DNA of 64,000 nucleotides from Macrostomum lignano (GCA_002269645.1 NIVC01000632.1:62001-126000), one strand, 5' to 3'; counted from the stretch's first letter, positions 29,475 to 64,000 are shown. The notes: generated by a model not told the origin, from the sequence alone. Translations and numbers: made by a program.

Positions 29475-29548
<74 letters not shown>

Positions 29549-29575
29549 GAGACAGACACAGACAGACAGACAGAC

Positions 29576-29618
<43 letters not shown>

Positions 29619-29623
29619 GAGAC

Positions 29624-29670
<47 letters not shown>

Positions 29671-29701
29671 GAGACAGAGAGACAGACACAGACAGACAGA
29701 C

Positions 29702-29744
<43 letters not shown>

Positions 29745-31009: not shown

Positions 31010-31060
<51 letters not shown>

Positions 31061-40079: not shown

Positions 40080-40490
40080 CCAGCACCGACACCCGGCCAC
40101 CCGCTTCAGCCCGTTGCGTCACTGCAAGACCACATCCGCTGCATTCATTTGAGGCTGTCGCAGCAGGGTCTGTTTTCTTCCGTCAATTGTTTATCAGATC
40201 ACCAAACGTCAAGACGTCTCGCTAACTAGACTCGCAGTTGAAGTCCTGTCTCTGCGAGGCGGGCATCAGTACTCGGAGCACAGCCTGTCTCTGCGAGGCG
40301 GGCATCAGTACTCGGAGCACAGCCTGTCTCTGCGAGGCGGGCATCAGTACTCGGAGCACAGCCTGTCTCTGCGAGGCGGGCATCAGTACTCGGAGCACAG
40401 CCTGTCTCTGCGAGGCGGGCATCAGTACTCGGAGCACAGCCTGTCTCTGCGAGGCGGGCATCAGTACTCGGAGCACAGCCTGTCTCTGGC
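40080..40490 (+). mobile_element. Tyrosine-recombinase (DIRS/Ngaro/Crypton-like) relic ending in a 39-bp minisatellite
   Basis: ARPHPLHSFEAVAAGSVFFRQL..LKSCLCEAGIS matches the relic at 52830-53120. The repeat unit (40238-40487, period 39) contains TAC TCG GAG CAC AGC CTG, i.e. YSEHSL. Confidence 0.7.
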
Positions 40491-42080: not shown

Positions 42081-45000
42081 ATGGAGAAATCGGGCTTGGA
42101 GAAATCTTCCCAGTCCAGCGACGGAGTCCGCAGCTCCTTGACGCAGTTCTGCAACTACACCACCGCCCACGGACTGGGCAGATTTGGGGCCCAGGCCAGC
42201 ACCTTCGGCAAAACCCTGTGGCTCTGCTTCCTGCTGGGCACCTACGGCGGGTTCACCTACCACATATACACTCTGGGCCTACATTTCGCCAGCGTGCCGC
42301 TCTCCACCAGCCTATCCACCTCGCTGCCGTTCGAGTTTCCCGACGTGTACATCTGCCCAACAGACACCGTGACCATGAGCCGGCTGGCCTCACCAATTGA
42401 CACCAACGAAATATTAAGAAACAGTCTTTGCAGCAGCGAGTGCGTTCTGAGAAAATTACTGTTCGAGATCAATTCTAAAGTCAGCTACAGTGCTAGCACA
42501 GAGGCTCTGCTCAATACTGTCATCTCTGCAGAGGAGGCCGTCCTGAACGAGCTGCAATATGGCAATACAAGTGAGAAAATTCTATTGAAGTTTGAATTGA
42601 ATGAAGATCAACTGGACTAAGCTGCATTTATGTTTTCTTAGACACATTTTCCCTGTCTAAGCTCGTAATTTCAAGGAGGTAAACCTCAATAAGAGCGCGT
42701 TGGAAGGTCATCTAAACTTAGAATTTCTCGTGCCAGTATTGGTCGTCAACTGAAGGGTATGTTTGGTGTGACGAGTGCCTGACGGGCTTGTAGTAATAAA
42801 ACAAAACTATAGTCTAAAAGGTCGAGAAACTGATCCAATTATCCAAAGAATCAATTTTACTTTCCATCCTAGCAATCAATCATTTGAGTGGCAGTGTATC
42901 CTACTTTGTAGAAGGATCACAAATTCACAAAGGAATCAATGTTGTTATTCCATTCACATGTCGAGAGCAGAAAGGCAGTCAAGACTCTTGAACAAAAATG
43001 TGAGCTAGTGAATCAACCTAACATCCAGAACCAGAGCAGAAAATGATTTCAGTTGATACTCATAAACTCCATGATTGGGCCGGTCGCTTTAAACAGTGCA
43101 GGCAGGTCACAATCATTGCATCGAAAGGAATGCCGGGTTAATTAAGCAACACAATGGACTTACAAGCAAAGCTCCGAACTAGACATGACATGCCAGCCAG
43201 TTTGATTCCAGTTGGTTTTGTTCCGCTTTACTTTAGACTGCATTCCGGTGCTTAATTTGACATCCCATTTAGGGAGAGCATAAAATAAGTCTATTTTACC
43301 ATAAAAGCTCATAAGATAGTTTCAACAAACCAAATTTTCGACCCTATGCCTGTTTCTGTTTTGATTCTCAAAACTCGCCATAAAAATATTCTCGCGCCGA
43401 CACGCCTCTCTCCAGCTTCTAGCGACACCTGTCGTGTCACAGCGGCTGGCGAAGAATACACAGGCAGCCTCTCCGTGGTCCCCGTCTACGAAAGTCTCTT
43501 TGTAGAATTCAGGAATGTCGCCCTCACGACTGCGCCAGCCAAACCCCATGTGACACTCACCAGCTGCATCGGCTGGAACGAGGCCGCTAGGGAGCTGCAA
43601 GCTGCGGGCCTGGACCAGCTGGCTGGCAGAGTTTTCAGTGCAGGCTTCGCTGACACCGACCGCAGCTGCAGGCAGCCTCCCAATCTGCCGTTGACGGCTC
43701 TAAAGCAAAATTTTACCTGTGAGTTGTTTGGTCACAGTATGGCTATTCAAGCTTTCAGCTTTGTCATGACACCACAGTCGTAAAAATGGCAGATCCGGTA
43801 TCGGAGTTCGTCGGTTGCATTGGACTGAGGGCCTGGCAGGAGAATGAAACTTGCATTGAGACCAAGTTCAATGTCATGACGGTGACCATGTGCCGGCAGT
43901 GCTGCTACAACAAGCAGTTTCCTTACGCCGGGGTGCATCGGTTCGCTTGCTATTGCTCCGATCGAATAGTTTCTGACCGGAAAGATTACCTCGATACCAA
44001 CGCGGACAATTCTTGCACTGAAAAGTGTCCGGGACATCTCAACCAAATCTGTGGCGGAGGCGATGGAAGCGAAGCCTACTTGTCTGTGTACAGAGTCATT
44101 GCTCTTGGTAAGCCATGAATAGTACCGAGGATAAGTGGAGAATTCCTCAGCTTGACGTTCACTCTTTTTTCACTCAGGCAGCGTTCCGGGTTTCGTACTG
44201 CCGTTCAGGCCCAACCTGGCAGGCCTGAGCAATGGGCCGTACTGCTTTTTTAGGGACTCCAGAAACAGTCTGTCTGCGTCCTACTGCAACATACCCTACT
44301 GCCGTGAGGACACGAGTGCATTCAAATATTGTGTACTCTAAACAGAGCAGTCCCTCAAAATCCAATAAAACAATTTTGGGCTTCAGAAATTTCGCATAAC
44401 AACGACTGTCTGCGGACAAATGATGCTTCTCAAGCAGACGACCTTCAAATGGCGAGGTACTCCGGCTTCGTGAACTTTACGGAAAGCGGCGAAGGCTGCA
44501 TGGACTGGCGCAGCTTCAGGGTGCTTGTGCTTTCCGGGAATTTGAACTACACCTGGGACATCAGCTACTCTGCGAATAGAGTAGGTAAGAAACTCACCTG
44601 ACAGTAGACGAGTTTTTTAACATTCAATTTCAAATTCCATTGAATTCATTTTTATGCCCTCCGCTTCGAGTTTAGCTCGAGTGGTGAGTCTGGACGTAGA
44701 GACGCCAGACTACCAAATGAGAGACTGCAGCCCGCTGCCCTATAACCACTGCCGAGCCGTTCGCCTGGTCGCTGACTTGATTGTCTACGAGTTTGAGTCG
44801 GGGGTGTACTCTTACATGTGAGTCGGGAGTGTACTCTTACATGCGAGTCGGGAGTGTACTCTTACATGTGAGTCGGGGAGTGTACTCTTACATGCGAGTC
44901 GGGAGTGTACTCTTACATGTGAGTCGGGGAGTGTACTCTTACATGTGAGTCGGGGGTGTACTCTTACATGCGAGTCGGGAATGTACTCTTACATGTGATT

Positions 45001-48000
45001 TCAAAGTCTTCCAAACTATGGTACAGTCCACAGACTATATTAAAAAAGACAGCAAATCTCAGGACCCTGTCCAGACAAGTTTTGGGTCAAACAACAATGT
45101 AGAAAATGGTTGCAGCTTCAGCCAAACTCATTTCGATCGATGGGTGATAGTTGAAAGTTGAAAGGTGAAAGTTGATTTTTTTATTCGGCGTATTCATGTC
45201 TATACAAATTCTATAGCCCAGGCTCGATTTCAAATTTCACATTTATCTGGGACTTAACTGAAATCTTAGCTCGGGTCTGCTCCTGCAATTGACGCCCTTG
45301 AGGGCCGACCCCCAAAGCACAGTGAAGTGTACATGCCTAACGATAAATAAAGTCTGGGCCACTGTACACTCCTGTGTGAGTGTGTGCCTGTGCGTATGAC
45401 TGCGTACGTATCCACACGCTTGTGTGCCTGCTCAGGGGAGTCGGCGGAATGGCAGTAATCTCTTGCCGGTTGTGTGACAATGTCGCCTAAAGTGTGTTAT
45501 GGTGCACAAAGCCCCCTGCCTCTAATAAAAACTTAGAGAATGGTTGTTGGACTTGACTCAGGCGCAGGTGGCTGCGGGCATCTGGATGCAGCGGGGAGGC
45601 GTCGACGCCCATTACGCTAACCCCTGGGGACCACGGGCAGCTCGTGCTGCGGTGTCGCGCAGGGAGATCCGGAGGTGCCGGTGACAGCAGCGTGGTCCCC
45701 CTTCGGAGAGTCCAGGAGGGGGTGGTCGCTCGCATGATAGCCCTTAGGTAGCGGACGAGCTGGCAGAGATTCTCGGGCCTGAAAATTTCCAAGGGTACGA
45801 GTTTGGGCCGAAGTAGGTGAGCCTGTCCTGAGTAAAGAACGGGCATTCACAGATGAAGTGCTCCGCATTCTCAACACCGGGGAGGCAGGATCACGGCTGG
45901 CTTTGTGCAACCACGGCTTTGCTAACACCCACACAGAATCGAACCGGCCTAACGAGGGAGTCGATCCCCACCGTGCATCTGTTAAATATCGTTAAGCAGA
46001 AGTTGTATTTTTTCATTTCAGCCGCAAGATCCACGAGTTCTCCAGCGCTGCTTGCGCCTATGCAAAGTCTGGCGAGGCCCGCATCGGACACTGCAGCATT
46101 CCGCTCTGCTGTAAGCCAGGAGGGTTGCTGCAAGGCCAGTCAGCAGCTGCCATTGCTTTTTTAGCGGGACAGAGCGTAAACCCCGGGATCTTATAAAAGA
46201 CAAGCTGTTGAAACCCTCGGGTATTTTACCCGCTTGAATTTCAATCCCCGGAACTATTTCTAAAGTATTTCTACTATTTCTAATGTGTTGTGAGCCCCGT
46301 CCTCCGGAGCAACGCCTACAGCTTTAACCTGTCGGGAAGCTGCGACCCCCAGGTCCCCAGTCAGAGCTCCCGTCCCGCGCCCTAGGGAGAAGCAGAAAAA
46401 GGACAGTAAATCGCGAACACGAACTTACACACCGTAGCCGATGCAGTTCGCCGTGCACTTTTTATGGTAGATCGACGAGTCGTTTTAGTCAATAGCCAAC
46501 GGAGGCGGACCAACGCGCGCAAGGGAGGAGTCTGCCCTCCAGACAGCGACTATATATTTTTCATTGGTCCTACGCGTACATGAATATACCTTAAGAACAA
46601 ATGTACGGTACAGCAGGGGAGGTGGGGCGGGGTGGCGTGATCGGCGTACGCATTGATTATTGATTGGAGGGGTGGGGCAGACTGGAGGGTTGGGGCGGGG
46701 CAGGAGGGCGAGAAAGGGCACGATTGCACAACAAATGTTTTGTTTTTCTTTGTACCTTAAATCTGAAGCCATGCTACGACAAAAACTTGTGAATACGAGT
46801 AGTTAGAACAAGGACTACTACGAACACTTAGTGTCTAGTAGTCGTTAAGTTAGGATAGAGGTAAAAAAGCTTAGAGTAAATTCGTGATAAATTGAATGTT
46901 GCGTTTTATGCGTTGACACTGCGTTGAGCCGAAGAGCGTGGCTTAAGTTGCATTTATATTTTGTTTAGAACGATATAAGTCGAGGCAAGCCTTAATAGAG
47001 TCAGTCGGTAGCTGCTTGTGACACAGACAAATAAATTAAACGCTGGGGCAACGACTGAAAATAAAAGTACATTGGATTCGGATCGGTGTACAACATTATA
47101 ATTTGGGGCTTTTGAAACGATCTCTCATCTCTCCTCTCTAATCTCTCCACTCTCTTCTCGTTTCTCTCTCCCATATTCTCTCTCCCCTCTCTCTCTCGTC
47201 TCATCTCTTCTCCTCTCCTCTCTTGTCTCCCATTTCTGCTCTCTATCGTCTCGTAGCTAAAAATGCGCTTTTAGCAGTTTCTTGCACTTTTAGGCAGGAA
47301 GACTTCGATTTAGGAAATTCTAAGGTAGCCTAAGACATTCTCCGTAGTGAGTTTAGGTTGGGCTCAGATAGCTTTCAGACTTAATGTTCCATTAAAAACT
47401 ATTTATGCAGACAATGTTCTCGGCTGTCAGTATTCTGTTGTAATGAGCCGAGTTGGAGCCGAGCTGCTACTCAGCAGGTTCGGCAGCAACCTGGGCATCG
47501 GACTCAGCGGTTGCCGCCTCGGTCGTCGCCGCTGCCGCATGGAAAACTTCACAACACTGCATCATCCGAATCTGGGCGTCTGCCATCGGTTCAATCAGGG
47601 CGGAGCCAGGTTAATTAACTCAGAATCTTCTAATGTCGACGACACAGAACTCGTGATTAACTACTTCACGGATGCGACGGACAGTCGCGGCCGCCAGTTC
47701 GCTGGCACGAAACTCCTGACTAACGCGCTTTCGCATTGGGCACTGGAAGCTGACGAGAAAGTAGCAATGAAGGTCAGTAAAATTCAAAAAAACTTTTAAA
47801 CACATTTATCTTCGATATAACCCAGGATGTAGTCGGGTTATTTTTATCAAGGACTACTCAAAATGAACAAATTGCGGGTCATTTTAATTTTCTTTTACTT
47901 CTTTGTTGACCCGTTGGGACAAGTGAGCTGAGATGAAAGCAATAATAGAAAGACTTCTGCTGCATGCAAGAAACCTGACGTTATTAAGCTCAACCCCCAG

Positions 48001-50601
48001 TAAAATCCAGTCAATAGCACAACTATTTCTATCTCTACAGGTGATTATAGTGCCACCGGGGCAATATCCCAGGCCTCAAGACACAGTCACCGTGGGTCCT
48101 GGCCAGCACATGAGGCTCATGATCCGATACGATCGAACCGTTCGATACTCGAAGCTGACCGATAAAGAATGCGCTGCCTCGGCCCAGCCTGTGGAATACG
48201 TTCTGCCGAATTGGAAGTCCTCGCTTCGGCTGTTTGATAAGAATAGAAGGTGAGCTGCGGTGCCCATTGCTCTCAGTCATCTTTTTTTATTAGAGGCAAG
48301 GGGGTTGTGTGCACCCTGGCGCACTTTAAGCGACATAGGCACACAACCGGCGAGAGGCATTACTGCCCATTCCGCCGACTCCCCTGAGCAGGCATACAAG
48401 CGCGCGGATACGTACGCACAGGCACACACTCACACAGGAGTGTACAGCGGCCCTAACTTTATATTATCGTTAGGCATGTACACTTCACTGCGCCTTGGGG
48501 GGTTGGCTCTCAAGGCCGTTAATTGCACGAGCAGAGCCAAGCCGAGATTCCAATTCAGCCCCAAATTAATGTGACTGCACTTGGAATCGAGCCAGGGTCG
48601 CTGCACACCAGAGCAGCTGCGCTACCGCTGGGCTACGGCCCCCTGCTCTCAGTCATCAAGTTCAGGCCACAGATAGTGCACATACCTGACGATTAGAGAG
48701 TCAGGGCGGGTGTACACCCTATGCGTACAGTATTGGCGAATGGCAGAATCGCCTCCCCGCTGGCCGTACAATTCGTCGATAGAGTTGTGCCACGTCGGGG
48801 CTTGCAGCCCTCCTGCCAATATCTATTTTTCAACTACTTACAAAGGATTACTCCAGAAATCCTACAAAATGAATTACAGAGAGAATGTGAACTATACAGC
48901 ATTTCAATCAGCCTCCGATTGGATGGAGAGGACGGATCTGCTTCGTGAAATGCTCGAAGGACAAACCAACGGAAGGTGCGTCTTTGAAAATTAGACTTCT
49001 AAAATATTAGAGCTTTCACTTAGCTACTGAAATACTCGCGGGCGTACCCTATAGCTGTAAAGAAACTCTAAAAAACAAATTTGCATATTAATTAAGCTAC
49101 TTTTGCTAGCTAAAATCAAACGGTTGTCAACAAAAATCGATCGAGAGATTTGTTAAGCATCGCAAATTTAGGTCGATCTTGGGTCAAAAGTAAAGAATTT
49201 TCGCTGCTTGCTAGTCCTATATACTAGTCCCATACGAATCTATGTGATCGTTTTTAGAAAAATTTATAACCAAAAATGTCCTGTAATTTTTCATTACTGA
49301 GCAAATCTTCAACCCGTTTCAGATCGGCAATCAGCCCGACCATGCGATTCGCAGCCAGCACTGTGGACGACTGCATAGACGAGTTCGTTGCGCGCCGATT
49401 CCTTGAGAACTGCAGCTGCCTCCCGCTGTTCCTGCCTGTCCGAGTGGGCGCGTTCCCGCCCGAGGTCAAGCAGTGCTTCAATGTGACCTCGCTAGAGGGC
49501 ATTGGCTCAGTGGAGCAGTGCTACCAGAGCCAGATTGAACAGCTGGCCTCACTGCAGAAAAGCGCTCGCCAAGCCTGCGTCCCCCTGTGCGAAACTCGCA
49601 GCTACTCTGTGAAGCTGGCCAGCTATCGGTGGCCAGAGATATCCACGCTGAATGCTCACGATTTCTTCCAGAGCCACCTCTTCGATTGGAATTATCCGAA
49701 CAACTTTCTCGGCTCCGAGGGAATTTCAACTCTATTTGGACTAAACTATTTCTCCAGACTGGTGAGCCAGATGGACACCTCTGTAGACGGCAGTATTAAC
49801 AAGGCAACGGCCGTCAAGGAGCTCACAGAAAATCTCAGTCTGATTGAAAAGAACTTTGTCAGAGTTACTGTGCAGGCTTCGAGTCTGTACGGTCAGGAGA
49901 TCAAGGAGGAGCCTTCGTACACAAGCAAGAACCTATTGGCTGATTTAGGCGGTAAGTCAGAAGAGTTGCACCAAGCCACCTGGTATAGATTTAGTTTGGG
50001 AAATGTATGGGCAAATAGAGATCAAGTGACTCAGCTCCTTACAATGGATGAGTCTACGACAATTGACTGCAGCGAGTTGACTGCTGACCCAATTCTAACC
50101 CTAGACCTGACCTAAATCGTGGGTAGTCAAATGTCATCGGCAGTCAAATTGATAGAAGTCAAATTGTGTCAGTCAGTCACGGTATCCCAAAATATTCATG
50201 TCTCAATAACTAGACCGGCTGTTTTGGCTCAGTTGTTTACGCTTTAGACTCCCATGCCAATGTCTGGTACACGAAAATTTCGATTCACGTAAGGACGACC
50301 CCAGGGCGCAGTGTGCACGTGTCTGTAGCCGAGGTCATCTGTGCTTGGTTAAAAATTTTACGCTGTGACTTGCTCTGATGCAAGGGCTGGGGAAAAATTG
50401 ACATCATCTGTTCCCCATCCACCAGGTGCTCTCGGTCTGTGGTCGGGGGTGTCGGTCCTGACGGCATGCGAGCTGATAGAGCTGTTGGTGTACCTGGCCA
50501 TCGCTCTGCAGCAGAAGCTCGGTCACACCCAAGTGTCAGAGAACGGCGCACCCCGGCAGAGTGAGCACGAGAACCCAGTCTCGATTTCCGATTGTGTTTA
50601 A
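42081..50601 (+). CDS. DEG/ENaC (ASC family) sodium channel with kringle-WSC-kringle ectodomain insert, paralog A, about 1025 aa
   Basis: Exons 42081-42570, 43416-43718, 43793-44107, 44178-44303, 44387-44584, 44676-44817, 47379 (or 47411)-47772, 48041-48249, 48880-48975, 49323-49951 and 50426-50601. Hallmarks: FCNYTTAHG, TM1, FPDVYIC, GVCHRFN, the Cys-rich thumb, and LLADLGGALGLWSGVSVLTACELIE. The 44817-47379 junction is uncertain. Confidence 0.88.
43420..44303 (+). other. Kringle-like domain 1 interrupted by a WSC domain (paralog A)
   Basis: Kringle N-half C-RVTAAGEEYTG..C-IGW..RSC-RQP (exon 2); WSC domain FVGC..MTVTMCRQCC..YAGV..CYC..C..KCPG..ICGG..LSVY (exon 3); kringle C-half GPYC-FF..SYC-NIPYC (exon 4). 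Confidence 0.8.
44795..45000. repeat. 25-26-bp minisatellite copying the exon/intron junction (GAGTCGGGAGTGTACTCTTACATGT)n
   Basis: About 8 copies beginning inside exon 44676-44817. Confidence 0.92.
45215..45480 (+). mobile_element. tRNA-derived SINE family B, 5'-truncated
   Basis: Body matches the reverse complement of 48282-48643. Confidence 0.8.
45740..45900 (-). mobile_element. Non-LTR retrotransposon ORF2 C-terminal zinc-knuckle relic
   Basis: Minus strand CLPGVENAEHFICECPFFTQDRLTYFG resembles the C..C...E..EH....C..F...R motif. Confidence 0.5.
48282..48643 (-). mobile_element. Full-length tRNA-derived SINE family B with A-tail and 14-bp TSD
   Basis: Minus-strand head GGGGCCGTAGCCCAGCGG (A box) and GGCTCGATTCC (B box). 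A T7 tract lies at 48282-48288. TSD TGCTCTCAGTCATC at 48268-48281 and 48644-48657. Confidence 0.9.
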
Positions 50602-50984
50602 GTGATGATTAATTAAATATGCTGTCAATGCTTTGTTTATTAACATGTAATAGTTTTAGCCATGGTAAGTCTTAGTATATTTATGTACCCATCAATATTT
50701 ACAATATTAAATGATAAAATTTATGTCTTTGCTTTGAAGAAATATGCTAATTGTTTCTTACTTCATCGCCATTCGATAATGTTTGATTATAAAAGTTGAG
50801 CACTATGAGACAATATTTTCCTTGGAAATTCGAGCTCAGAAGTTCGAAACGTCAACAGATGCTCTTGTTGGTCTTGTGTGTCAAAGACAAAAACTCAAGA
50901 ACTGCGATGCGGTCGAGTTTTTTATTTTATTTTCCGACAGTCAAATTTAGTATTCGTCTTGTCTTCATAGTTTACACTAGTGCT

Positions 50985-51240
50985 GGATAGAGACTCAGGT
51001 TGTAGATAGAGATTCAGGTAGTAGATAGGGATTCAGGTACTGGATAGAGATTCAGGTACTGGATAAAGATTCAGGTACTGGATAAAGATTTAGGTACTGG
51101 ATAGAGATTCAGGTACTGGATAAAGATTTAGGTACTGGATAAAGATTCAGGTACTGGATAAAGATTCAGGTACTGGATAAAGATTCAAGTAGTAGAATGA
51201 GATACAGGTACTAGATGGAGATATAGGTAGTAGATAAAGA
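50985..51240. repeat. 19-bp minisatellite (GGTACTGGATAAAGATTCA)n
   Basis: Period 19 (51061 and 51080). Confidence 0.92.
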
Positions 51241-51377
51241 TCGAAGTATACCATATAGAGGAGGCTCAGAAGCTACTGGTGATGGATATTCAGGCAACTA
51301 CTGCAGGCTGTGTCGCAGTGAGACAGTATCAAGCTCCGGCTGCATCTTTAACAGATCATCGATTCGTACGCAGTCAT

Positions 51378-51602
51378 AAGCACAGGCACACCCTCACACA
51401 GGAGTGTACAGCGGCCCTAACTTTACTAATCGTTAGGCATGTACACTTCACTGTGCCTTGGGGGTTGGGCCTCAGTTGGCGTTAATTGCACGAGTTATCC
51501 CAAGCCAAGATTCCAATTTAGCACCAAATTAATGTGACTGCACTTGGAATCGAGCCTGAGCCGCTGGCACATCAGAGCTCCGCGCTAGACCACTGGGCTC
51601 CC
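51378..51602 (-). mobile_element. SINE family B copy, 3'-truncated
   Basis: Matches about 48420-48640. Confidence 0.82.
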
Positions 51603-52269
51603 GTGGTCCACTGGTGGTCCGGTGGTAATTGCCCGTAAGCGTGAGCCTTTACGGGGTCCGCTCCTTTGCACTCTCCCCCCTGCTCTGGCCGCTTTGTACT
51701 CCGTGCGTACTCTCTGTCCCTCCGTCGCGCCCCCTCCGTCGCGCTTATCTATAAGTTTATTTCCGATCGCTTGTTTAACTCAATAAATCGTTTTATTGTC
51801 CCACGTCTATAGGGCTCTTTTGCTCGTCTGTGTGCCTCGTTCCCCCAAGTTCGCGTCCCTCTGGCTTCGTGCTCCGACCGTGGAGTTAATCTGTATAATC
51901 TGTATAAGCGTATCAACATAAAGTCATTCATGTTGAATGAATAATCAATCATTCTGATGAAAACTTGCAACTCGAGATTTTTCTTGCAATAGTGTCGGAG
52001 AACGTCAGTAAAGATTGTTTGAGCACAGCATCGAACTAAGGGTACTCAAAAACTTGAACTAACTACGTGATCGACGGTCTCTTCAAATGATGAAGTGCTG
52101 CGAAAATCCGTTTTTTTGTAGCATATTTACTAGTTATGTTTTTTTCTAGAAAATGACTTGCTCTTTCAGTCACAGGGTTGCTCACATTGACATTGAATTG
52201 ATCCCGTCTGGCTGACATAAGGGCGACGGAACTTCTGTCAGCAGTATGTCTTGCTGTTTGATTCCCGGT

Positions 52270-52480
52270 AGAGAGCGGCGCTGTTCCAGGCGTTGATCGA
52301 GACCGTCCTGATGTACAACGCCGAGAACAGCAAGCTGACACACCGCCTTCAAGATCAAATCCAGTGAGTTACCATCACGACACCAGTTGTACAACACTCG
52401 GCCAGTGCAAGAGCTGCTGCTAATGTTGTAGACGCCCAGGATTCGGTCGGCTGGGGCGGTCTTTGTTCGAGCTCTAGCAC
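52270..52480 (+). mobile_element. RTE-clade LINE relic
   Basis: RAALFQALIETVLMYNAENSKLTHRLQDQI matches the post-RT motif LF.A.V..VLLY..E...LT......D. Confidence 0.6.
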
Positions 52481-52829
52481 TGGGTCACGGCCTGTAACGC
52501 AGCTATTGATTTAATTAATACCCTATGACAGCGTATTTTGTTTTTGTTTTTGTTGTTTTTATCGTATAAGTCTCCAAAAAATTAAGACGTATAAATCTCC
52601 ACAGCCACCCGGAAAAAAAGCAGAACGAGGACAGAACAAAGAACTAGCAAAAACAGAAACAAGGGCACATTTCCCTCCTAAAGCAAAGACAAAAACCGCG
52701 AGCAAAAATAAAAAAATAGCAAGAGTCTCTGGCAATTGAGTAAAGAAAAATAACTATTCGAAAAAGCGCCAGCACCGAAGCTTCCAATTTTTGAGTTGCA
52801 AAAAACGCCGCATCGTCTTTAAAAAGGTA

Positions 52830-53120
52830 TCAGCTGTTCACCACATCGCTGCGCCAGCTGCCCATGCGCTGGACGGGCGACTGGTGGACATTCAGGCCGG
52901 CCCGGGCTGCCCAAGTATCCGAAGCTCTTTGCAAGCCGTGCACTGAGTACCCGGCCGCACTGATGCCCACCTTGCCGAGCCAGGATTTAAGCTGAGTTTG
53001 CAAGACGTCAAAGCCTGGTGTTCTGATTAGCAATTGGCGAAATAAAACAGACCCTGCTGCGACAGCCTCAGACAACTGCAGCGGATGTGGGCGTGCACTG
53101 CTATGCGTCCCTGTCAAACT
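52830..53120 (-). mobile_element. Tyrosine-recombinase C-terminal relic
   Basis: LKSWLGKVGISAAGYSVHGLQRASDTWAARAG..VQRMGSWRSDVVNS matches the YS.HS.RRG.AT.A..AG...I...G.W.SD...Y pattern of DIRS/Ngaro/Crypton recombinases, with decayed catalytic residues. Confidence 0.75.
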
Positions 53121-54114
53121 GGTTGGTTTTCCAACCAGCAAGTAAGCAGCAGACCTACATGTACTTTGTACTGTGACATTGAGCTCAAACGCAGCACACG
53201 TCAGCGCGAATCGCTGGCAGCAGGCTGGACTTCCTGAACATTCCCCACCAAGCGCACAAAATTCCCCCTCACCATGCCACCTGCAAATGGTTTGAGCAGT
53301 CAATTCGATTGTGCAGTGCAGGATCTCCGATAACGCTGCAGCGCGAATCAGTGCCGCCCTGAGGTCGCGCTTGGCCCTATCTCCGGACGAAACGACTCAC
53401 CGGACGGAATCACTCACTGGACGAAAGCTCCAAAATTTAGCTAAAGCAATAAAACCGTGTTCAAAACTCAACCTTTGACGTTATTTGAGTTCTGCGATCT
53501 AGTCAGCATTTCTCGCAGTGCCAAAGGTTCCACAAATGATAAAATCTGGTCTGATATTAAAGTAACGTTACTATGTATTGCAGAAAAGTACGTGGAGAAA
53601 AAGAAAATAATATCGAGGCAATACCTGGAGCTCATGATGAGATGGAGAGAGACCAAAATCCTGACAGCAAGGGCTACACAACGGCGATGGTAAATACAAT
53701 GATTTAGTAAACTAACTTGCAACAGCGCGAATAGAGCAAGAAATACAATTCAAAAACAAAAAAAAACTATTGGTTCTCTGCGGCATTCAAGCAGTCACAA
53801 CTGGGGTAGTTTTGCTAGGCAGAAATACACTGAGGATATGGGACAAATAGACATTTATCATTAAAGCTGTATCAGGTCTAGACAAAGGTACGCTCGTATA
53901 ATATTATTGCAATAAGTCCAACTCTATTAAAAATAAAAGGAAGGTTGCTTTTGAAGCAGCTTGTATCAGCAAAAAATATAAATTCGACGATTTTTTACCA
54001 TTCTAAAAAGTCTGTATTTAAACGATGCAATCCTGATCAGCACGAGACCTCAAGTTAAGCAACCTCGAGCATTTGCTGTTCCATCAGTTATTCACTGCTG
54101 TTCGGTAGGTGCTC

Positions 54115-57100
54115 TCAATGAACCGAGATGGAGACCTCAGGTGCTGCAATGTCTGTCATTTTGTCTGTCATTTCAACCTCAGTGGCTGAGTCGTCAGCTT
54201 TCATCTCGCCGCTGTCTTGCTGCTCAGCGTTGCCAGTCGCAGGCCCTGACGGCTGGGCGGGCTGCTCTGTACGTCGAGTCGCTGCCACCAGGTAGACCAG
54301 CAGCTCAATCAGCTCACACGCGGTAAGAACTGAGATGCCGGACCAGAGACCGAGAGCGCCTAAAAAATGCTTACATATTAGCCATTGTTCGGAACTGCAA
54401 ATGACAGCATAACACGGTAGCTTTGAAATGCTCACCGCCAAGGTCGGCCAGCAGATTCTTGATGGTGTAAGAAGGCTCTTCCGTCATCTCCTGTCCGAAG
54501 TCGCTGACCGGCTTGATTGACACCTTGACCAGGCTCTCCTGCAAAACTTCCAGCTTGTTTCTAAAATCGAGCAGCTCAGAGGCCGAGAGCATCGTTGAGC
54601 GGTTGTACATTTCGCTACTCCGGATGTCCAGGTAGAACAGATTCGCGATGCCTTTGGAGAACAGGAAGTTGTAGGGGTAGGACCAGTCCCCTTGGCTGTT
54701 CTGCATGAAGTCCACCGCTGTCTCGATGGTCAGGCCGGGCCACGGGTAGGTGATGGGTCGGAAAGTGTAGAAGCGAGTGTTGCACATCGTTAGGCAGACC
54801 TGGCGGGCTTCCATTTCGTAACGCGATATTGAGCTCATTCGCTCTGTGTAACACTTCTCCATCCTCTTGATGCTCTCCATGTCTGTCTGGTTGAAGCAGT
54901 AGGTGTAGTTCTGGAAGAGCTGCACCGAAACAGGAAGAAACGAGGGCAGACAGCCGCAGTGTTCGATGAACTTCTTCACCGCGTACAGGTTGACGCAGTC
55001 GCGCTGATCTTGCATCTCGAATGTCAAGTTTTCGCTCATCGGACTGCTGCAAGTCGCAATGGAATAATTTTAAGCAGAAAAGGGCAAAGCGAAAGCTGAG
55101 AGCAGCAATGCCCTGCAAGAGAGGAACTTACATGCTGCTATTTACAGTCCTCAGCCGGCCTCGTAAAGTCTGGAGCTTTGCTGACCAGTTCAGTGAGGAA
55201 ATTGTAGTCGTCATATTGAATGAATCTCTGGAGATTTTAATTCAAGACGTTTTTGCTCTGCTTGTCAGTTCAAAGGCTATGCAATGCTAAACAGAAAATT
55301 CAAGCTCACAACTCAGGACTTGAGTAGTTCCAGCTGGTGCGCCACGAGGGAATCCGGTAGACTGTGGGCCCCGCGGGCGGACGGCACTCCTGCGTTGGAG
55401 GCTTCGAATACCTGTTCAGCTTGTCGAAGCGAATGTTCAGCTGCAGGTGCTGGCCCGGGCTGGCGGTGATGGCGTTTTCTCGCCAGGGAAACTGGCCCTT
55501 AGGAACCAGAATCACCTGGAGGGTTTCGGGCTGCCAATATTCATTTCAATTAGAAGTAACTGGTCTGGAACAAACCATAAGCCCCTGTTGTAGTTACTTG
55601 CTATTGCGGAAACGTTTTTCTCGCTCTATACTCCATTTTCTGAGTCATGAGCGCCCTGCCCACCATTTCTAGTCTAGTTCGTTAATATTGTGAGGTTGCG
55701 TTTGATTTGTGGAGTTGGGGTGGGGGCTGCTCTGTCAGTTGGCAGGGCGCGTTGCACTGTGGGTCTGGTTGGGGGGGGGGGGTTGGCGGGCGTGGCAGGG
55801 TCTGGCCGCCGGCCGGGCTTTGCGCGTGCCCCTCCCCAGCCGTGCCCCTGCCCCGTGCTCAGGGCTGGTTGGCTGCGGCCGGGCCAGCTTTGGCGCGGGT
55901 GCGGCCCCTCCCCCCTAGGCGGGGTTTTGATTGGCTGGCCGGCGCGGTCAGTCTCTATTTTGTTGGGGTAGCTTGTTTGGTTGGGCTTAGCCGGTGGGGC
56001 CATCTGCCCCAGGGTTTGATTATTATTTAATGCGGCTCTGGGCCTTGCTCACGCCCTTCGCTCGGTTTGCTCTGTTTGCTCTGTTTGTTCTGTTTGTTCT
56101 GTTCGTGCTGTTTTGTGTTTTGAATTGGTGTGCTCGGAGAGTACAAGTGCGAGACTAGACCGTTAAACAGCAATTCTAGCTATTGAATACGAGAAAAGAA
56201 ACAGAAGAGCCTTGAGAAGAATCTTGGAAGTTAGAACCTGCACGAGCGAATCAATAAACGTAACGGCGATTTGGCCACTGGTAAGCCGCCTGCTGCTTGA
56301 GTTCGTTCTTTTCTGGGAGCTTGTTAGGCCGAGTTCTTGCCAGAGCGTCATAACGCCGGGAGATCATATAGCTTTTTGTAGTATTGTACCGTCTACTCTA
56401 TATAGTGTGTACAACCTACAGTATTTAGACTAGAAGCACTCGAGAGTGTCACCACACCCCGAGCCGCAGCGTGAACTCTGAGTGTCACAACACCAGAGGG
56501 ATCGAACAATTATCGCAGAGCGTCGTCACGCCTGCTCGTATCCATAAAAGTACAGACAGAGCGTCACTACGCCTGTATCTTACGTATAATATATATTGTA
56601 CTCGGGACTGGGCACCCAAACCGACCCGGGTTACAACACTTGCATCTCGCTTTACTCTGTGCATGCCACCACCCCAGTTGGGTGAGTCCTTTTATAACCT
56701 TTCTATCGCGGACTATTATAATCGCTCCCCAGTTATCGTGCATGCCAAATATACTTCGTGAGTTGACTCTAAATTCTCGGCTCTTACAATATTTTTATAT
56801 CTCTATTCAGGCAGTACTATTTAAGCGGCTTACGCAAGTTTGCCGAAAGTTTTGGGACAAAGTTCTTGCCTTCATGGCGCTCAGCGTGTCGTCATTCGCG
56901 TCGACCAGTCCGGGAAAAATCACTTTGGCCATCCGGCTCAGACCGGGCAGCCGCCGGCCCTTGGAGTCTGTAGAGTCGGTGAAGTAATTAAAAGACAGCA
57001 ACGATTCCGTGGCCTTGAGATCTTTGGTGAGCCCGACGAACTTTTCCTGGTTGAACCGGTGGCACAGTCCGAGCTCCGGGTGCAGCAGGGTGGTGAAGTC

Positions 57101-60100
57101 CTCCATTGTGCAGGCCTGGTTGCCGAAAGAGCAGCCGGTGAAGCCGATGCCGATGCTGCTGCCGAACCGGCTGGCCAGCAGGGCGTTGCCCACCTGGTCC
57201 CGCACCAGGCCGGGGATGCTCTGCGTCACTCGGGCTGGCGTAAGAGATTTTGGTTGCGGCAGCGTCTCAGGATCAGTTCGAATCAATCACGAAATTGAAT
57301 AAGGCTTTGAACCTAGCCATGAGCTTTGGGGCTCAGTAGTTCGGCGGCTACCGTGTCTGACTCTCGCGCCAGAGTACCCAGATTTGATTCCGTGTGCCAA
57401 CCCCAGGGCACAGAATGTTCTACCGCCTGACGATTAGACAAGCAGGGCTGCTGTGCACCCTGTGTGAGCGTGTGCATGCTCAGGGGTCAGCGGTATGGAC
57501 ATGACTGCTTGCGTTCACTCTGGCTGTCTCCTTGATTAGCGGCAGTGCCCAGCGCCTTACTGAATACTCACTAAATCCATGAAGATTTAAAGGCTTGTAA
57601 CGACCTTGACTTGGCTTGAAAAGACTTGTATCGATCAACCTTGAATGGAATCCCGCCTTTCTAGCAAATTAAATCAATAAAACCACTCACAGCAGGCGTC
57701 CACTCTGCAGGCGCCCAGGATCGCACTTCTCTGGTTGATCATGACGAAGCAGACAGGAGTATCGGATTTGACAATCTGGTGACGGCTGGGTGTGTGGGGA
57801 ACTTGTGACTTTCGCAATTTTTTAAATAATGAAATGTCGTGCATCCAATGAAAGAAAAAAGACATGTAAAGCTATTAAATATTGGTATAACATTAAGAAA
57901 TGTATTGAATGTAATAGGGGCGTCCTAGCCTAGTGGTTAAAGCGTCGGTTTCACGACTGAACGGTCGGGAGATCGATTCTCTACAGATTCGAAATAATTG
58001 GTGTCATTGAGCAGGAAATTTAACTTTGTATTGCTTCAGTTCACCCAGCTGTAAAATGGTAGCCAACAGCTGGGGTAACTAAGGGTGTGTGTGGCGACCC
58101 TCAAGTCTTTGGACTCAACAGCCGCATGCAGCCTTCAGATTCGCCGGCAATAGCTGCGGCTGAGCTATTGGTTGCACATCTGCCCATTAACGCGGATTCA
58201 ATTTATTATTATTATTGGTATGGAGTGTGGAAAATTCAACTAATCTAAGCTAGCAGATTCGCAATTTTGTCTCTTTAGACTTACTCGGGCAAGGTCTTAC
58301 TTAAGGAACATTTAATGGCCTTAAATGTTGTAAAGAAAATTGCTGGTGACAGAGCTCTGCTTCCTGTTCGAATTTCTAGTTCTAGACCTTCATATCTGGA
58401 TTCTGTGTGCTCAAAACGACAGTTGAGTCTGGACTGGGAACCTCTACTGACAATCGCGATACTCCAAGAACGCCCGTCAATACTTACATAAAGTAGTACC
58501 CATCAGATCTGCCGGTCTTATAGACGAAGGCATCAATAACCACCCTGGCAGCCCGGCAGAAGTTTCCCGTGTTGTTCGTGTACAAGCTGTAGTCCGGAGT
58601 CTCAACGTACATTTTTTTTATTTCAACTGCGAAAGTTGTAAAATTTTTGTGGCTTTGCTGTATAATAAAATTTCTGTCCATTGAGTTTAGTTGAGTTGGA
58701 GAGTAACTGAAATAGATTGAAATACTCCTGACCCGCTGGGTGCATAACGGTGTACCGCTTGTAAAGTGTTATATCTCATCTTTGAAACGCTAAAAAGTTG
58801 ACGATTGAGTCAGCAACGCCGCACTCAACCGTCACGCCGACCTGACCCAAGTGACCTGCTTCGGCGGCGCCCAGCACTGATTGTGGTGGTTGTTGGTTTT
58901 TGTGTTTTTGTAGATGAGGCTGTTTTTTCCGGTGGTTTCTTGCAGAAAACCTCCAGTGGTGCAGAGTTTTTCTAAAGTCACTTATACATTTCTAGTGCGC
59001 ACTGTCAGTAGCACTCTAATTATTTTTTCTGAACACGTCTTGCAATAAAAACTTACTCATTCTCACATCGTAGGAAAGCAATCTGAAACTTAATTTGAAA
59101 GAATTCCACTGGCCTAAAAATGTGGTTTCTAAATCAGACCAGTTGAGGCAGTTGTCGCGAGTCTTGGTCTTGGATCTGTGGCCGGTGTAGCGTAGGTACT
59201 GCGAATCACTGATGGAGCCATCGTTGCTGCTGGATAGACAGTCGAAGGATGAGGAAATGGCTGTGGGAATGCGGAAAACAAGTCATGAAGTTAAAACAAT
59301 GCCGTCTTGCTGCAATTGTTGAATTAGTTTTAATTTTTGACCTTTTGTAGCTAGCTGTCGGATTGCAACAAAGGACTTAAGTAGCTCAGAGTAGTCGCTC
59401 CTTCAACGCTAAGAAATATCTGCTTGATATGACCAAAACTATTGGCGCTCAACAGGTAAACTAGAAAAAGTAGCTTTTGGTCACTTGTAGTTTCTTGTAT
59501 AAGGCCAGAGTATCAAAGCTTTGAGGCCTGGCAAGTATTTGGTCAAGGGCTAAAGGTCGAATCGATCATCAATATGGGTGGGGGCACAGCCTAGTGGTCT
59601 AGTGGGGCGCTCTGATGTATCAGTGGCTCGGTATCGATTCCAGGTACAGTCACACTACGACGTCTACGACTACGACGAGGCTAAATTGAATTCTCGGCTT
59701 AGCTCTGCTCGTGCAATTAACGCCCTTAATGAACAACCCCCAAGGCTCAGGGAAGTTTACGTGCCTAACGATAAATAAAGTTAGGGCCCATTTACACTCC
59801 TGTGTGAGTGTGTGCCTGCGTACGTAGCCACGCGCTTGTTTGCCTGCTCAGTGGAGTCGGCGGAATGGGCAGTAATGCCTCTCGCCGGTTGTGTGCCTAT
59901 GCTATTAATATAAGGACTGTTGAGTCGATTACAAAAATTGTTGAAAATTTTTGTAATTACAAAGTTTAATTAATTAGCAGTTTTACAAAAACTGCTGAAA
60001 ACTTATTGCTCGTAATTGTATTGCTAATTTTATATACTGAGAAGTTGTAACTGTAATGACTGAAAAATTAACAAATTCCCAGGTAAAAACAGCGGTGCTC

Positions 60101-62072
60101 ACGGCAGTAAGGCACATTGCAGTAGGTGGCACCCAGGCGGCCCCCAGCGGCTCTGTAGAAGCAGTAGGGCCCGACTCTGAGGCTGTCTAATGCGGGGCTG
60201 AACGGGATGAACAGAGGCTTGGGGTCTGCAGGTGAGAAATCGAAATAGTAAAGTTAATCAATGCCTGCGCATGCCAGAGCATCGAATGCATTAAAAAACA
60301 ACGCTCGTATTGTAATTAACTATTACATGTGCATTGGGTGCATTGCGCAAGTGTCTTCTGTAGGACTAGATACGCCGTTGTAAGGTGCTAAGGTGTGACA
60401 GCTAACATCACAGACGGCAGGGCAAACTGCAGCTCAGCCTTAGCAAATGAGCCATAATGCCACGCACATACAGAATATGAAATGATTCAGGAAAGCTTAG
60501 CAGGACTGCTTTATCTCCAACTTAAAATGTCTTGAAAAGAGTGACACAATTTTAATCGATGGAAGGTCGTGTTCATTTTGCGCACTGACAACTGGATTGC
60601 ACAAACGCACTCGTGACGCTCACCCAGACTCCGCACCAGATAGACGCTGAGCGCTCTCTCGCCTCCGCAGATCTCCTTAGCATCTCCTGGGCAGCGAACT
60701 CCGCACGCAGAGTTCTTATGCTTGAGGCTATCGTTGCCAGGCAGCTCGTTGCCGCAGTAGCAGGTGTCGCCAGCCAGCAGGCTCATGTAGCTGTAGGCAG
60801 CGTTGTAGCAGCACTCTGCGCACAGGCCGAGCCGGAGCTGGTCAAACATGAAGCCGCTCAGGCACTTGTGCTGCCGCAGCCCTGTGCCTTCTGCGTCGCT
60901 TGCGGGCAAGCAACCGACGTAAGTTTGCAGCGGACCTGCATTTGAACACCCGGTTGCAGAAATCCGCTTTCAGTTCAGTAGCAAGGAATAATGCGTGAGC
61001 TATTGTTGACGAGACGTACCGGTAAATATCTTAGCGAGACTAAAATATATTAGTGAAGCTGTACGTAATTTATGAGTACGTCAGACAGCACAACTAAAAA
61101 TATGCAAAGAGGCTTGAGGCTGGAACACCAAAGCAGACAATGGAGATTGGGCGGTGAGGCTGGGATTGGAGGGGTTAAGCTGGGAGGTAGGAATGTGAGT
61201 TTTCATTCAAAGAAGGAATTGCCCTTTTTATTGCTGCGCCGCACGGAACTAAGACGCACGAAATTCGAGGACACGTCAAATTTTTGCTGCGCACCTTCCT
61301 AAGCAAGAATCAAGTCGCCAGCCCTTCGGACCGTCGAGATATTCAACGAGTTAGCCTAATACTCGGATACTCGAACTTTGTCACCTGGTGTCATCTGCTG
61401 AAACGCCGACAGCTTTGGGGGATGACTGAAGTTCTTGTGAACTTTGTTGAGGATACCCAGCAGTGAGATACGCACTGGCACTTATGGAAAAATCCAAGTG
61501 TCTGGGTGAATCGTTGAATATCTCGACGTTCCGAAGGGCTGGCGTCTTGATTCTTCTTTGAGAAGGTGCGCAGGAAAACGTTGGCCTGCATTTTGTGAGC
61601 CTGAGTTGCTCTATGTCTGTTCAGGAGCACCGTCGTGTCCAAAAGAACATTAAAATGCTTCAAATGAACAACGCACCAATCTATTTATTAGCATATCCGT
61701 GATACAAGTAGAACTTTTAAAATGCCATCTCTTGCCACTCACGCGTCGCATTGTCGTGGAAGGCGGTGAGCGGCAGGCCGGTTGGCTGCCTACAGCTGCG
61801 GTGGCTGTCGGCGAAGCCAGCGGCGAGGATTCTTCCAGCCAGCTGGCGCAGTCCGGCCGCCTGCAGCTCCCTGGCGGCCTCATTCCAGCCGATGCAGTCG
61901 CTGTAGCTCACATGGGGCGGCTGGTCTTTCCACTGGAAACGTGTATAATAAAAAAACAGAAAGTACATTTTTATTTTTGCAACAATGATGGAAGCATTAA
62001 ACACGGGCACCCGGGACAGGTTGCCGCGGTACTCTTCTCCATCCGGAGTTATTCGGCACACGTTCAAAGGCA
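54115..62072 (-). CDS. DEG/ENaC channel with kringle-WSC-kringle insert, paralog B (5'-partial; TM1 exon not found in the window)
   Basis: Exons 62072-61743, 60935-60624, 60225-60103, 59260-59057, 58626-58488, 57785-57691, 57234-56870 (GC donor), 55515-55310, 55227-55132, 55046-54436 and 54359-54115. Phases are consistent and intron positions match paralog A. TM2 reads LLADLGGALGLWSGISVLTACELIE. Confidence 0.88.
57916..58191 (+). mobile_element. tRNA-derived SINE family A, copy 2
   Basis: Matches 34812-35083. Confidence 0.8.
59577..59905 (+). mobile_element. SINE family B copy
   Basis: tRNA-like head (TAGTGGTCTAG, TCGATTCC); body matches 48282-48643. Confidence 0.82.
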
Positions 62073-62979
62073 CTGCAACGGAAGAGGGGTCGAATTTGAT
62101 AAAATAAAGACTGCCAGAGCTCGGACTAGGTCCCGTCCCGAGTTCTGACGTAAACCCCGTGTACCGACACAGAAACCCGCACTCAGGGACTACTAAATAC
62201 TCCTGATGCTTGCCCCCACTGTTCGGGACAAGCCTGGACGAAAATTACCAGTCGGAAGTTTTTTGAAAAATGACTTTTCAGGCAGTCTGCAAATCTCTGA
62301 AGTTGTCCAAGATGGCAGGATGAAACAGCAACGAACGTGTCTCAAATGAAACTCAAACTTGTGTTGTCAGCTGCGCTTTACAATGCCCTTATAGCCCGAC
62401 CCTTTCGCTCTCCGCCTCTCCTCTCCCTGCCGCTGGCTCATTCTAGACTGCCCCTGTCTGAAGTTGCCATTCTTGTTTTCGTTTAAGATGTCTCGTAGTT
62501 TGTATTTAAATTGGCTGCCCCTTTCAGTTCCTCTCTCGTTTCGGCCAGTCCAATCATGTCTCTGGATTGGCTTCCCCCTCTCTTTCTTTTGCCCTTCAAC
62601 TCGGTGAGTTTTGCCCCCCCCCTTAGCCCGCGTGGCTAAGCCCCACCCAGCCCCCGCTCTCACTGAGTGCTGCAGTGTTTATGCGCGCGCACGGCCCTTG
62701 CCCGGCTCTCACCTCCCTCTTGCAGGATTGTAGGAGTGTCAGTACGCTCCCGGCCCATCCACTTCCGCCCCGCAGTGTTTGTGCGCCTAGGGGTCCCCTC
62801 CTATCACACTCGGCAGGCTCTAGACAGTCCATGCAGTACCCGAACCCCAATCACCCCGTCTGCGGTCCGCACGGATGGTAGCGGAAACTACAACACTGGC
62901 TCTATTTGCAAGCTGAAAGTCTAAGACTGAAAACTTCGACATTGAAGTTGCAGCGAAAACCAGTCTCCAGCGAAATCTG

Positions 62980-63903
62980 GGGGGTCTTTCTCGAAAGCAA
63001 CTTACGATCGACCATAGACGTAAGTTGGGTAAGCTACACTAACGGGTTGCTCGAAGGGCTCGCAAGTTAGCTATGCGTAAGATTGATCGCAACTTTACGA
63101 GTTCGTAACTTTGCGCAAAAGACTGTTTCTCAAAACGTTCGTATGTCTATGGTCTTTCGTAAGGTTGATCTTAACCCTACGACTGCTCGGTATCAGTCGT
63201 AAGACGCACTTAAGCACTAATCGCATAGTACGTGAAGCTTTAGTCAAGCCAAGTCAAGTTAAACTTTATCGAAGGTGGGTCTTTCTCGGAAGCAACTTAC
63301 GACAGACTAAGTAAAGATATTTGCAGATTTAAGACCATAGACATGCAACTTTTCGTTTCAGATACGACTTACGAACAGCGTAAGCCCATGGATGAATGAA
63401 TAGAATGGATTGCTATTCTGGCTCTGGCTATTTTCGTTTTTGACTCTTTTGCATCCGGTTCCCCCCCGTGCCTTTTCATTGGTTGATGATTGCCATAGAC
63501 AATTTTCGGCCTTCGCCCCTTTCTTTCGATGCACAAGCGAAAAGAACTGAGAATGTCAGTTACTTGCAGAGAATATCGAGCGCTCGTAGGTCTTCCCCCT
63601 TTATTTCAAAACACGAGCGAAAGCGCTTGTGCATCGAAAGAAAGGGGCGAAGGCCGAAAATTGTCTATGGCAATCATCAACCAATGAAAAGGCACGGGGG
63701 GGAACCGGATGCAAAAGAGTCAAAAACGAAAATAGCCAGAGCCAGAACAGCAATCCATTCTATTCACCCATCCATGCGTAAGCCACGCAAAGTCTAAGTG
63801 AGTTTTGAGAAAGCGTCTTACGAGCAAACTTACGCTACACGTAAATTTCTTTCTTACGATCTAACTTACCATAGAACTTACGTGAGTTTCGAGAAACACC
63901 CCC
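62980..63903. mobile_element. PIF/Harbinger-like MITE
   Basis: TIRs GGGGGTCTTTCTCGAAA ... TTTCGAGAAACACCCCC; 3-bp TSD CTG at 62977-62979 and 63904-63906. Confidence 0.7.
63387..63776. mobile_element. hAT-like palindromic MITE nested in the Harbinger-like MITE
   Basis: About 150-bp near-perfect TIRs starting CATGGA; exact 8-bp TSD CGTAAGCC at 63379-63386 and 63777-63784. Confidence 0.88.
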
Positions 63904-64000
63904 CTGAACTACCTCGTATTTTCGAGTGTTGCGTCCTTCGAGTTTAGTTGTCTATGGTTCAGGAATCCTCGTGTCCATTATTTCTTACTTCGTATTTTCA

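Follow-up and report, generated by a model that had tools for sequence, protein, structure and literature searches.

Kringle-like and WSC domains inserted in the finger of two DEG/ENaC subunits encoded in Macrostomum lignano

A 64,000-nt stretch of Macrostomum lignano DNA (GCA_002269645.1 NIVC01000632.1:62001-126000), referred to below as the window, contains two convergently oriented paralogs, A on the plus strand (42081-50601) and B on the minus strand (62072-54115). Both are intact genes that encode subunits of the DEG/ENaC (ASC, amiloride-sensitive sodium channel) family of ion channels, and both carry six extra exons in the part coding for the finger subdomain. From its sequence, the product of these exons is a cysteine-rich module in which a WSC domain is nested in a first kringle-like domain (K1) and followed by a second one (K2). 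As an overall explanation, we cautiously favour DEG/ENaC subunits in which a shuffled finger module would serve as an extracellular ligand sensor or matrix tether.

The gene models were obtained with M. lignano proteins as guides and by enumeration of canonical splice sites. Paralog A starts at an ATG at 42081 and comprises 12 exons, whose intron phases match and which keep a single frame open for a protein of 1044 aa. Paralog B enters the window at an acceptor, its first visible exon beginning at 62072, and its frame is open across the 11 exons present (exons 2-12; 907 aa) up to the stop codon at 54117-54115. Exon 1 of B, with the N-terminus, the HG motif and the first transmembrane segment (TM1), was not found in 62100-64000 even with permissive search settings, and presumably lies past the window edge. 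When the plus strand at 41-51.5 kb was compared with the minus strand at 54-62 kb, seven collinear blocks with 31-53% aa identity were detected between stop-to-stop fragments. Intron positions are common to both genes, and the introns, described as short, are all GT-AG save one GC-AG in B. A Pfam scan of the raw open reading frames (ORFs) located ASC in the first and in the large late exons and WSC in one exon per copy, with a best Kringle E-value of 0.064. When proteins were searched with a rough concatenate as query, seven were retrieved, each from M. lignano, of 650-1360 aa and with precomputed Pfam matches to PF01822 and PF00858.

In the spliced proteins, the Pfam ASC model (PF00858; cut-off 23.6) scored 141 bits for A and 91.9 bits for B, with the match in two stretches around the insert, the second of which covers residues 588-1006 of A. 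Exon 1 of A (42081-42570; ASC E 3.4e-13, profile positions 1-87) encodes the N-terminus, an AHGLG sequence with the HG motif (42168-42173), TM1 (42213-42281), FPDVYICP (42336-42359) and the first finger helices, and ends in phase 1 at the donor GTGAGA. The ASC sequence resumes in exon 8 (47411-47772), which starts in phase 1 and carries the last finger helix, CRLGRRRC, CHRFN (47581-47595) and YFTDATDS, followed by exon 9 (48041-48249), with palm and beta-ball strands, and exon 10 (48880-48975), with a short helical segment (NxT...DW). Exon 11 (49323-49951; ASC E 4e-13) codes for the Cys-rich thumb with its usual cysteine ladder, the knuckle and the palm strand preceding TM2, and exon 12 (50426-50601) for TM2 itself (LGLWSGVSVLTACELIELLVYL), with G-V-S as the filter (50446-50454), the C-terminus and the stop codon (50599-50601). 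In B, CHRFN, the thumb and a G-I-S filter are present, and the HG/TM1 portion is outside the window. All the standard DEG/ENaC parts that a first-pass annotation of this DNA had assigned to the two paralogs, including HG and TM1 in A, were therefore located.

When PDB entries were ranked by sequence, the closest were the FMRFamide-gated Na+ channel FaNaC of Aplysia (7yvb, E 7e-18), ASIC5, Malacoceros FaNaC1 (8on7, E 6e-11) and the ENaC subunits, of which alpha, beta and gamma were detected at E 4e-7 to 1e-5. In a word-indexed homology search, a profile of the ASC C-terminal part returned M. lignano proteins alone, and exon 1 gave no matches; Rfam detected no RNA family in the window. The alignment with FaNaC (7yvb) paired residues 18-110 of A with FaNaC 66-160 and residues 586-621 with FaNaC 207-242, leaving about 475 residues in A where FaNaC has about 47. 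Because of this alignment, the insert was placed in the finger subdomain, as the first-pass annotation had proposed. It corresponds to exons 2-7 of A (1173 nt, 391 codons, aa 164-555) and sits between the post-TM1 strand with the first finger helices and the last finger helix. Its length, and that of the whole A protein, agree with the extra 350-400 aa between the FPxVxIC region and the palm, and with the total of about 1000 aa, that had been estimated before splicing was modelled.

In an alignment of eight paralogs, 22 cysteines of the insert are invariant and fall into three groups. The first, in exon 2 (43416-43718 in A, 303 nt, phase 1-1), consists of three cysteines within the motifs C-R-x-T-x2-G-E-E-Y-x-G, C-I-x-W and R-C-R-x-P-x-G-L-P-L; in A, Cys1 lies in CRVTAAGEEYTG, Cys2 in CIGW and Cys3 in CRQPPNLPL, and the three cysteines and their motifs are invariant in the eight paralogs. 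Matches of this exon were weak and to kringle only. The second group, in exon 3 (43793-44107, 315 nt, phase 1-1), has the eight cysteines and the CGG motif of a canonical, complete WSC domain. The third, in exon 4 (44178-44303, 126 nt, phase 1-1), has three cysteines in G-P-Y-C-F-F and C-N-[IV]-P-Y-C (GPYCFF and CNIPYC in A). This exon aligns with the kringle C-termini of ROR2, neurotrypsin and Kremen, and its junctions are identical to those of UniProt A0A1I8HZ70 (P0076). When exons 2 and 4 are read together, they form a kringle Cys1-Cys6 pattern that is interrupted after 'CRNP' and before 'PWC'. Along the chain, the N-terminal half of K1 (Cys1-3) is thus followed by WSC (eight cysteines), the C-terminal half of K1 (Cys4-6) and K2; on this pattern, the WSC exon is nested in K1 between Cys3 and Cys4, and is not flanked by two complete kringles.

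Exons 5-7 encode a second six-cysteine kringle pattern (D-C, R-Y-T-G, C-x2-W, N-F-C-R, P-V-C, C-x-I-P-x-C) with much longer loops. In A, exon 5 (44387-44584, 198 nt, phase 1-1; 100% identical to P0076) contains Cys1, ARYSG and Cys2 in CMDW, exon 6 (44676-44817) the long middle loop and Cys3 (NHCRAV), and exon 7 (46022-46110) Cys4-6, in AACAYA and CSIPLC. The last two are jointly 231 nt long and of phase 1-1. The equivalent exons of B, all on the minus strand, are exon 2 (61743-62072; K1 N-half, the first B exon in the window), exon 3 (60624-60935, 312 nt; WSC, 47.8 bits, 100% identical to P0154), exon 4 (60103-60225; K1 C-half), exon 5 (59057-59260; K2 Cys1-2), exon 6 (58488-58626; K2 Cys3, NFCRAARV) and exon 7 (57691-57785; K2 Cys4-6, within both P0154 and P0157). 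The insert carries N-glycosylation sequons, and the two-transmembrane topology makes the module extracellular. Full-length paralogs share 35% pairwise identity in the insert and 42-45% in the channel parts, and since the cysteines are all invariant at this low identity, the insert is under constraint.

The WSC assignment is secure, including its PAN/Apple-like fold. The Pfam WSC model (PF01822) scored 33.8-47.8 bits against a cut-off of 27.8, with 40.2 bits for exon 3 of A. Eight conserved cysteines and a CGG motif define the domain (PMC9024836), and here cysteines C285, C298, C301, C302, C317, C319, C339 and C351 are invariant, with the motif reading ICGGG, ICGGE or ACGGD. A profile of the insert retrieved Kremen1 (E 3e-10, through its WSC and kringle C-terminus) and the cysteine-rich domain (CRD) of Wsc1 as top PDB matches. 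An AlphaFold model of K1 with its nested WSC, made for the paralog P0001 with window exon fragments added, had a mean pLDDT (the per-residue confidence) of 73 and matched the yeast Wsc1 CRD (7pz2) with TM-score 0.75, a root-mean-square deviation of 3.4 Å, E 3.5e-6 and 30% identity; Kremen1 was also matched. In a model of the whole 389-aa insert of P0001, based on six sequences, the mean pLDDT was 58 and WSC alone was recognisable.

For K2, derivation from a kringle is very probable. Its profile matched tPA kringle 2 (4e-6), ROR1 (3e-5), prothrombin (2e-4) and ROR2 (6e-4) in the PDB, and 56 of the 59 matches listed were kringle proteins. Kringle was also the sole family that recurred among 24,736 Pfam models, in six of the eight K1 and seven of the eight K2 sequences, always below the gathering score. 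In addition, the six cysteines and the flanking kringle motifs (YxG, CxxW, CRxP, a PWC-like motif and CxxPxC) are found in order in K2, and across the WSC in K1, and are invariant in the eight paralogs. The lysine-binding pocket of kringles is formed by the acidic pair after CRNP and the tryptophan of PWC. These positions are not conserved in the module, where CRNPDxD is replaced by CRxPxGLPL (K1) or CRAARVV (K2), and PWC by PYC (K1) or PVC (K2). Because the anionic and aromatic pocket residues are missing from the sequence, plasminogen-type lysine binding by the module is unlikely.

The gating inputs of DEG/ENaC channels are diverse (protons, peptides, proteases and force), and their divergence is located in the finger, which takes the input in FaNaC (peptide), ENaC (proteolysis of the GRIP domain) and ASIC (acidic pocket). 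Because the finger receives the gating inputs in these channels, binding to the module, or a pull on it, would be expected to modulate opening. In the explanation that we favour, the subunits would assemble as trimeric Na+-selective channels, the three module copies would form a peripheral crown on the fingers, and each module would probably bind an extracellular protein or glycan partner and pass the signal to the gate, as a ligand sensor or a matrix tether. A more specific version, which we put forward as tentative, is that the nested kringle(WSC)-kringle crown is the true ligand- or force-receiving domain, so that protein or glycan binding or matrix pull would open the pore, and that the skippable WSC exon could act as a splice switch between sensor variants.

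The main rival is a module without a gating role, which would serve as an anchoring (to glycocalyx or matrix), clustering, trafficking or assembly device in a channel gated by protons or a peptide, or constitutively open. No sequence feature separates tethering from gating, so that sequence alone cannot distinguish the two. In yeast sensors, the head anchored in the wall is a WSC domain, and folds of the PAN type bind proteins and carbohydrates (PMC9024836), as would suit an anchor; the kringle and WSC domains of Kremen1 form a rigid binding platform (PMC5014086). Against this rival, the insertion is in the finger, the gating-input subdomain of the best-studied members, and not in a neutral terminus, and the conservation of the insert is near that of the channel core. 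A module of this kind is possible, but we consider it clearly less probable than a sensor or tether acting on the gate.

Among known channels, several resemble A and B in part. The closest solved relatives by sequence, the Aplysia and Malacoceros FaNaCs, have in common with A and B the DEG/ENaC core, TM2 and the GxS filter, and their finger region is a family-specific ligand site; however, the interval that takes up about 475 residues in A has only about 47 in FaNaC, which lacks autonomous disulfide-rich modules. The ENaC GRIP (gating release of inhibition by proteolysis) domain, a regulatory input to gating, resembles the module in being a lineage-specific finger insertion, but it is small, consists of beta strands, contains inhibitory tracts that proteases release and is not made of shuffled kringle and WSC domains; in the A/B family, conserved furin-type sites were not noted. 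The nearest precedent for a DEG/ENaC with mobile extracellular modules is EGAS ('EGF plus ASC') of Caenorhabditis elegans, although its module is EGF and not kringle/WSC (PMC10424705). In oocytes, EGAS-1 to -4 produced no currents (PMC10424705), which counts against the function proposed here: channel activity of A and B cannot be assumed, and EGAS provides no functional model for them.

The identity of K1 is less firm than that of K2, and several results speak against its being a kringle. The Pfam Kringle model (PF00051) reached 17.4 bits at best (range 13-17), missing the gathering score of 34.3 for both domains. In a Foldseek search, the K1 model did not match any kringle significantly, giving just a local match of 18 residues to the neurotrypsin kringle with E 2.4, and the segment between Cys2 and Cys3 was modelled by AlphaFold as two confident helices (pLDDT >90), unlike in classical kringles. 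When K1 and K2 were aligned with hhalign, only the C-terminal 28 columns were paired, with a probability of 11.5%. All this would fit a rival in which exons 2 and 4 form a lineage-specific Cys-rich scaffold around WSC and only the second domain is kringle-derived. However, when the WSC residues were removed from K1, all eight PDB matches were kringles, if only at E 0.14-0.25, and the alignments crossed the excision point seamlessly, as in ROR2 (HAYCRNPGG--QMEGPWCF...CDVPSC). The joined halves match nothing but kringles in the databases, their motifs follow one another as in a kringle (C-x5-G-x2-Y-x-G, C-x2-W, C-R-x-P, G-P-Y-C-F, C-x-[IV]-P-x-C), and exactly three plus three cysteines lie on either side of a self-contained eight-cysteine WSC. 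We therefore regard K1 as likely to be kringle-derived, and a non-kringle scaffold as doubtful.

Of the kringle-WSC-kringle module described in the first-pass annotation, the WSC and the second kringle are thus well supported, whereas the first is weak, both kringles are below threshold and the WSC is nested rather than serial. The pairing that it had likened to Kremen does not hold as a layout. Kremen1/2, the Kringle-WSC-CUB receptors of Dickkopf, are the only well-known combination of kringle and WSC, and both domain types are common to the A/B insert; but the Kremen domains are serial on a single-pass receptor, whereas in A and B the WSC is nested, there is a second kringle and the host is a two-transmembrane ion channel. 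No match to a CUB domain was obtained in the A/B proteins. The best structural match of the WSC exon, yeast Wsc1, has the eight cysteines and CGG in common with it (PMC9024836), but is a fungal single-pass sensor.

The models were corroborated by public proteins, as an exhaustive profile search returned UniProt and NCBI fragments encoded by the A/B locus itself. UniProt A0A1I8HZS3 (P0154, 365 aa) is 100% identical, without gaps, to aa 139-503 of B, a stretch that includes WSC and both kringle parts and reaches into the ASC palm; NCBI BOX15_Mlig029271g1 (P0157, 524 aa) is 99.6% identical, also ungapped, to aa 384-906 of B, and spans the GC-donor junction and exon 10; and A0A1I8HZ70 (P0076) is 100% identical to aa 307-477 of A. 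The complete and identical order of parts is also seen in P0001 (1052 aa) and P0002 (1049 aa), both of them paralogs of full length. The Mlig gene set derives from RNA-seq, by genome-guided transcript assembly and TransDecoder ORFs (PMC5730564), and from their naming we infer that the BOX15_Mlig proteins belong to it. A weakness of the models is that exons 1-2 of both genes, and exons 6-8 of A, are not represented in any transcript-derived database protein. Both UniProt and NCBI already contain the A and B sequences, under unstudied 'WSC domain-containing protein' entries with PF01822 and PF00858, all of them fragments.

The last rival, that the kringle/WSC exons belong to a separate nested gene, an annotation artefact or decaying pseudogene loci, could appeal to these fragmentary entries and to the polycistronic, trans-spliced precursors of M. 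lignano, in which about 7% of assembled transcripts encode at least two proteins (PMC5730564), but it is effectively refuted by the open frame and matching phases of A, by the same order of parts with all cysteines invariant in at least 10 paralogous loci, and by database proteins that join the WSC, kringle and ASC exons exactly as modelled; the complete order of parts in P0001 and P0002 speaks against it as well. Because the public M. lignano proteins match the spliced models at 99.6-100%, the extra exons are not a nested gene, and neither this nor exon skipping, either of which would have undone the first-pass interpretation, accounts for the data.

The intron phases point to the origin of the insert. 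In A, exon 1 ends in phase 1, exons 2, 3, 4 and 5 are each 1-1, exons 6 and 7 are jointly 1-1 and exon 8 starts in phase 1, and B has the same pattern. Since the insert is bounded by phase-1 introns and its constituent exons are 1-1, an origin by exon shuffling is suggested. An ancestral channel gene would have acquired a kringle-kringle unit in a phase-1 intron of its finger-coding region, the WSC exon would itself have been inserted into the intron splitting the first kringle, and the gene with its module would then have expanded to at least 10 loci in the M. lignano lineage. The WSC exon can be skipped in frame (315 nt in A, 312 in B), and skipping would be predicted to restore an uninterrupted kringle.

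To follow the distribution of the module, 1.84 billion representative proteins were searched with an insert profile in HMMER. Only M. lignano proteins matched the module over its full length in a single stretch, in agreement with the lineage-specific family that had been predicted; the remaining matches among the top 150 covered WSC positions only, mostly in multi-WSC proteins, and three that were sampled belong to a diplonemid, an oyster and a yeast. When every retrieved protein was scanned locally with an ASC model, matches were confined to the M. lignano set, which gained one further locus, P0078. At least 10 paralogous loci were counted: A, B, P0001, P0002/9, P0003, P0004/6, P0005, P0007/10, P0078 and P0159. 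The architecture therefore appears confined to the M. lignano lineage. A full-text literature search retrieved no publication on proteins that combine ASC with WSC or kringle, nor on these Mlig gene identifiers, and Dandamudi et al. tested other DEG/ENaC genes of M. lignano (Mlig049925, Mlig051885 and Mlig041003; PMC9234716). Thus, as the first-pass annotation had supposed for its function, the architecture is undescribed in the literature, though its sequences are already in databases.

The A and B genes represent a clean case of phase 1-1 exon shuffling, with one domain inserted into another's intron, and their current annotations in M. lignano are fragmentary and without the kringle-like parts. 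If the finger module works as a sensor or tether, the family would be a natural experiment in swapping gating inputs, and possibly a template for engineering ligand-gated channels. If the crown is itself the receiving domain, exon shuffling would have given rise to a natural 'receptor-module-gated' DEG/ENaC. The question can be tested directly, as M. lignano is tractable and its transgenesis is established (PMC5730564).

Some details of the gene models deserve mention. In B, the channel part continues on the minus strand with exon 8 (56870-57234), where ASC resumes, exon 9 (55310-55515), exon 10 (55132-55227), exon 11 (54436-55046), with the thumb and a Pfam ASC match, and exon 12 (54115-54359), with TM2, the G-I-S filter (54339-54331) and the stop codon. 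Exon 10, the homologue of exon 10 of A, is confirmed by its presence in P0157 and is skipped in an older prediction (P0158). Intron 7 of B is the GC-AG one, with AAG/GCAAGA at 56869 (minus strand) at the position where A has AAG/GTCAGT. A read-through of exon 8 to '...QNFRQTC' with a donor at 56834 was considered and rejected; the GC donor at 56870 was chosen because the transcript-based protein P0157 carries the resulting junction SAMK/VILVP.

In A, a 25-bp tandem repeat of eight copies (44794-44998) begins within the last 24 nt of exon 6 and copies the donor context ACATG/TGAGT several times, with the frame kept by the first donor only. As the frame closes with a stop one codon past it, 44817 is the last usable donor of exon 6. 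In exon 2 of B, an AT-rich, in-frame stretch of 51 nt (61943-61993, minus strand; GTTGCA...TTTCCAG) may be a micro-intron: the loop between Cys1 and Cys2 has 55 residues with it and 38 without it, against 46-47 in the other paralogs, and no database protein spans the stretch.

Outside the two genes, the upstream neighbour (28806-38529, plus strand) is a multi-exon homologue of the proteasome adaptor ECM29 (Pfam ECM29_N, E 3e-30; HEAT_ECM29, E 9e-25), whose introns are crowded with minisatellites; in one of these, at 31918-32858, a 34-bp unit is repeated 27.6 times with 99% matches. At 7951-17896, around 439 copies of the 23-bp unit ACATGACGCTTCTATGATTTTTT make up a satellite array of about 10 kb, with a higher-order period of 114 bp and a strong AT skew of -0.33, and a second block of the same unit extends over 1.6 kb (4683-6255). 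Another repeat, interspersed and about 250 bp long, may resemble a SINE or MITE (a short interspersed or miniature inverted-repeat transposable element); it has no match in Rfam and is present in four copies with 73% mean column identity: two in introns of A (45265-45474 and 48305-48559), one downstream of A (51369-51467) and one in intron 4 of B (59685-59924). Further minisatellites, with units of 4-39 bp, were located at 18965-21272, 26928-27689, 29475-29866, 36155-36636, 40245-40488 and 50983-51241. Some of these create long spurious ORFs on both strands, and the window is unusually rich in repeats outside the exons.

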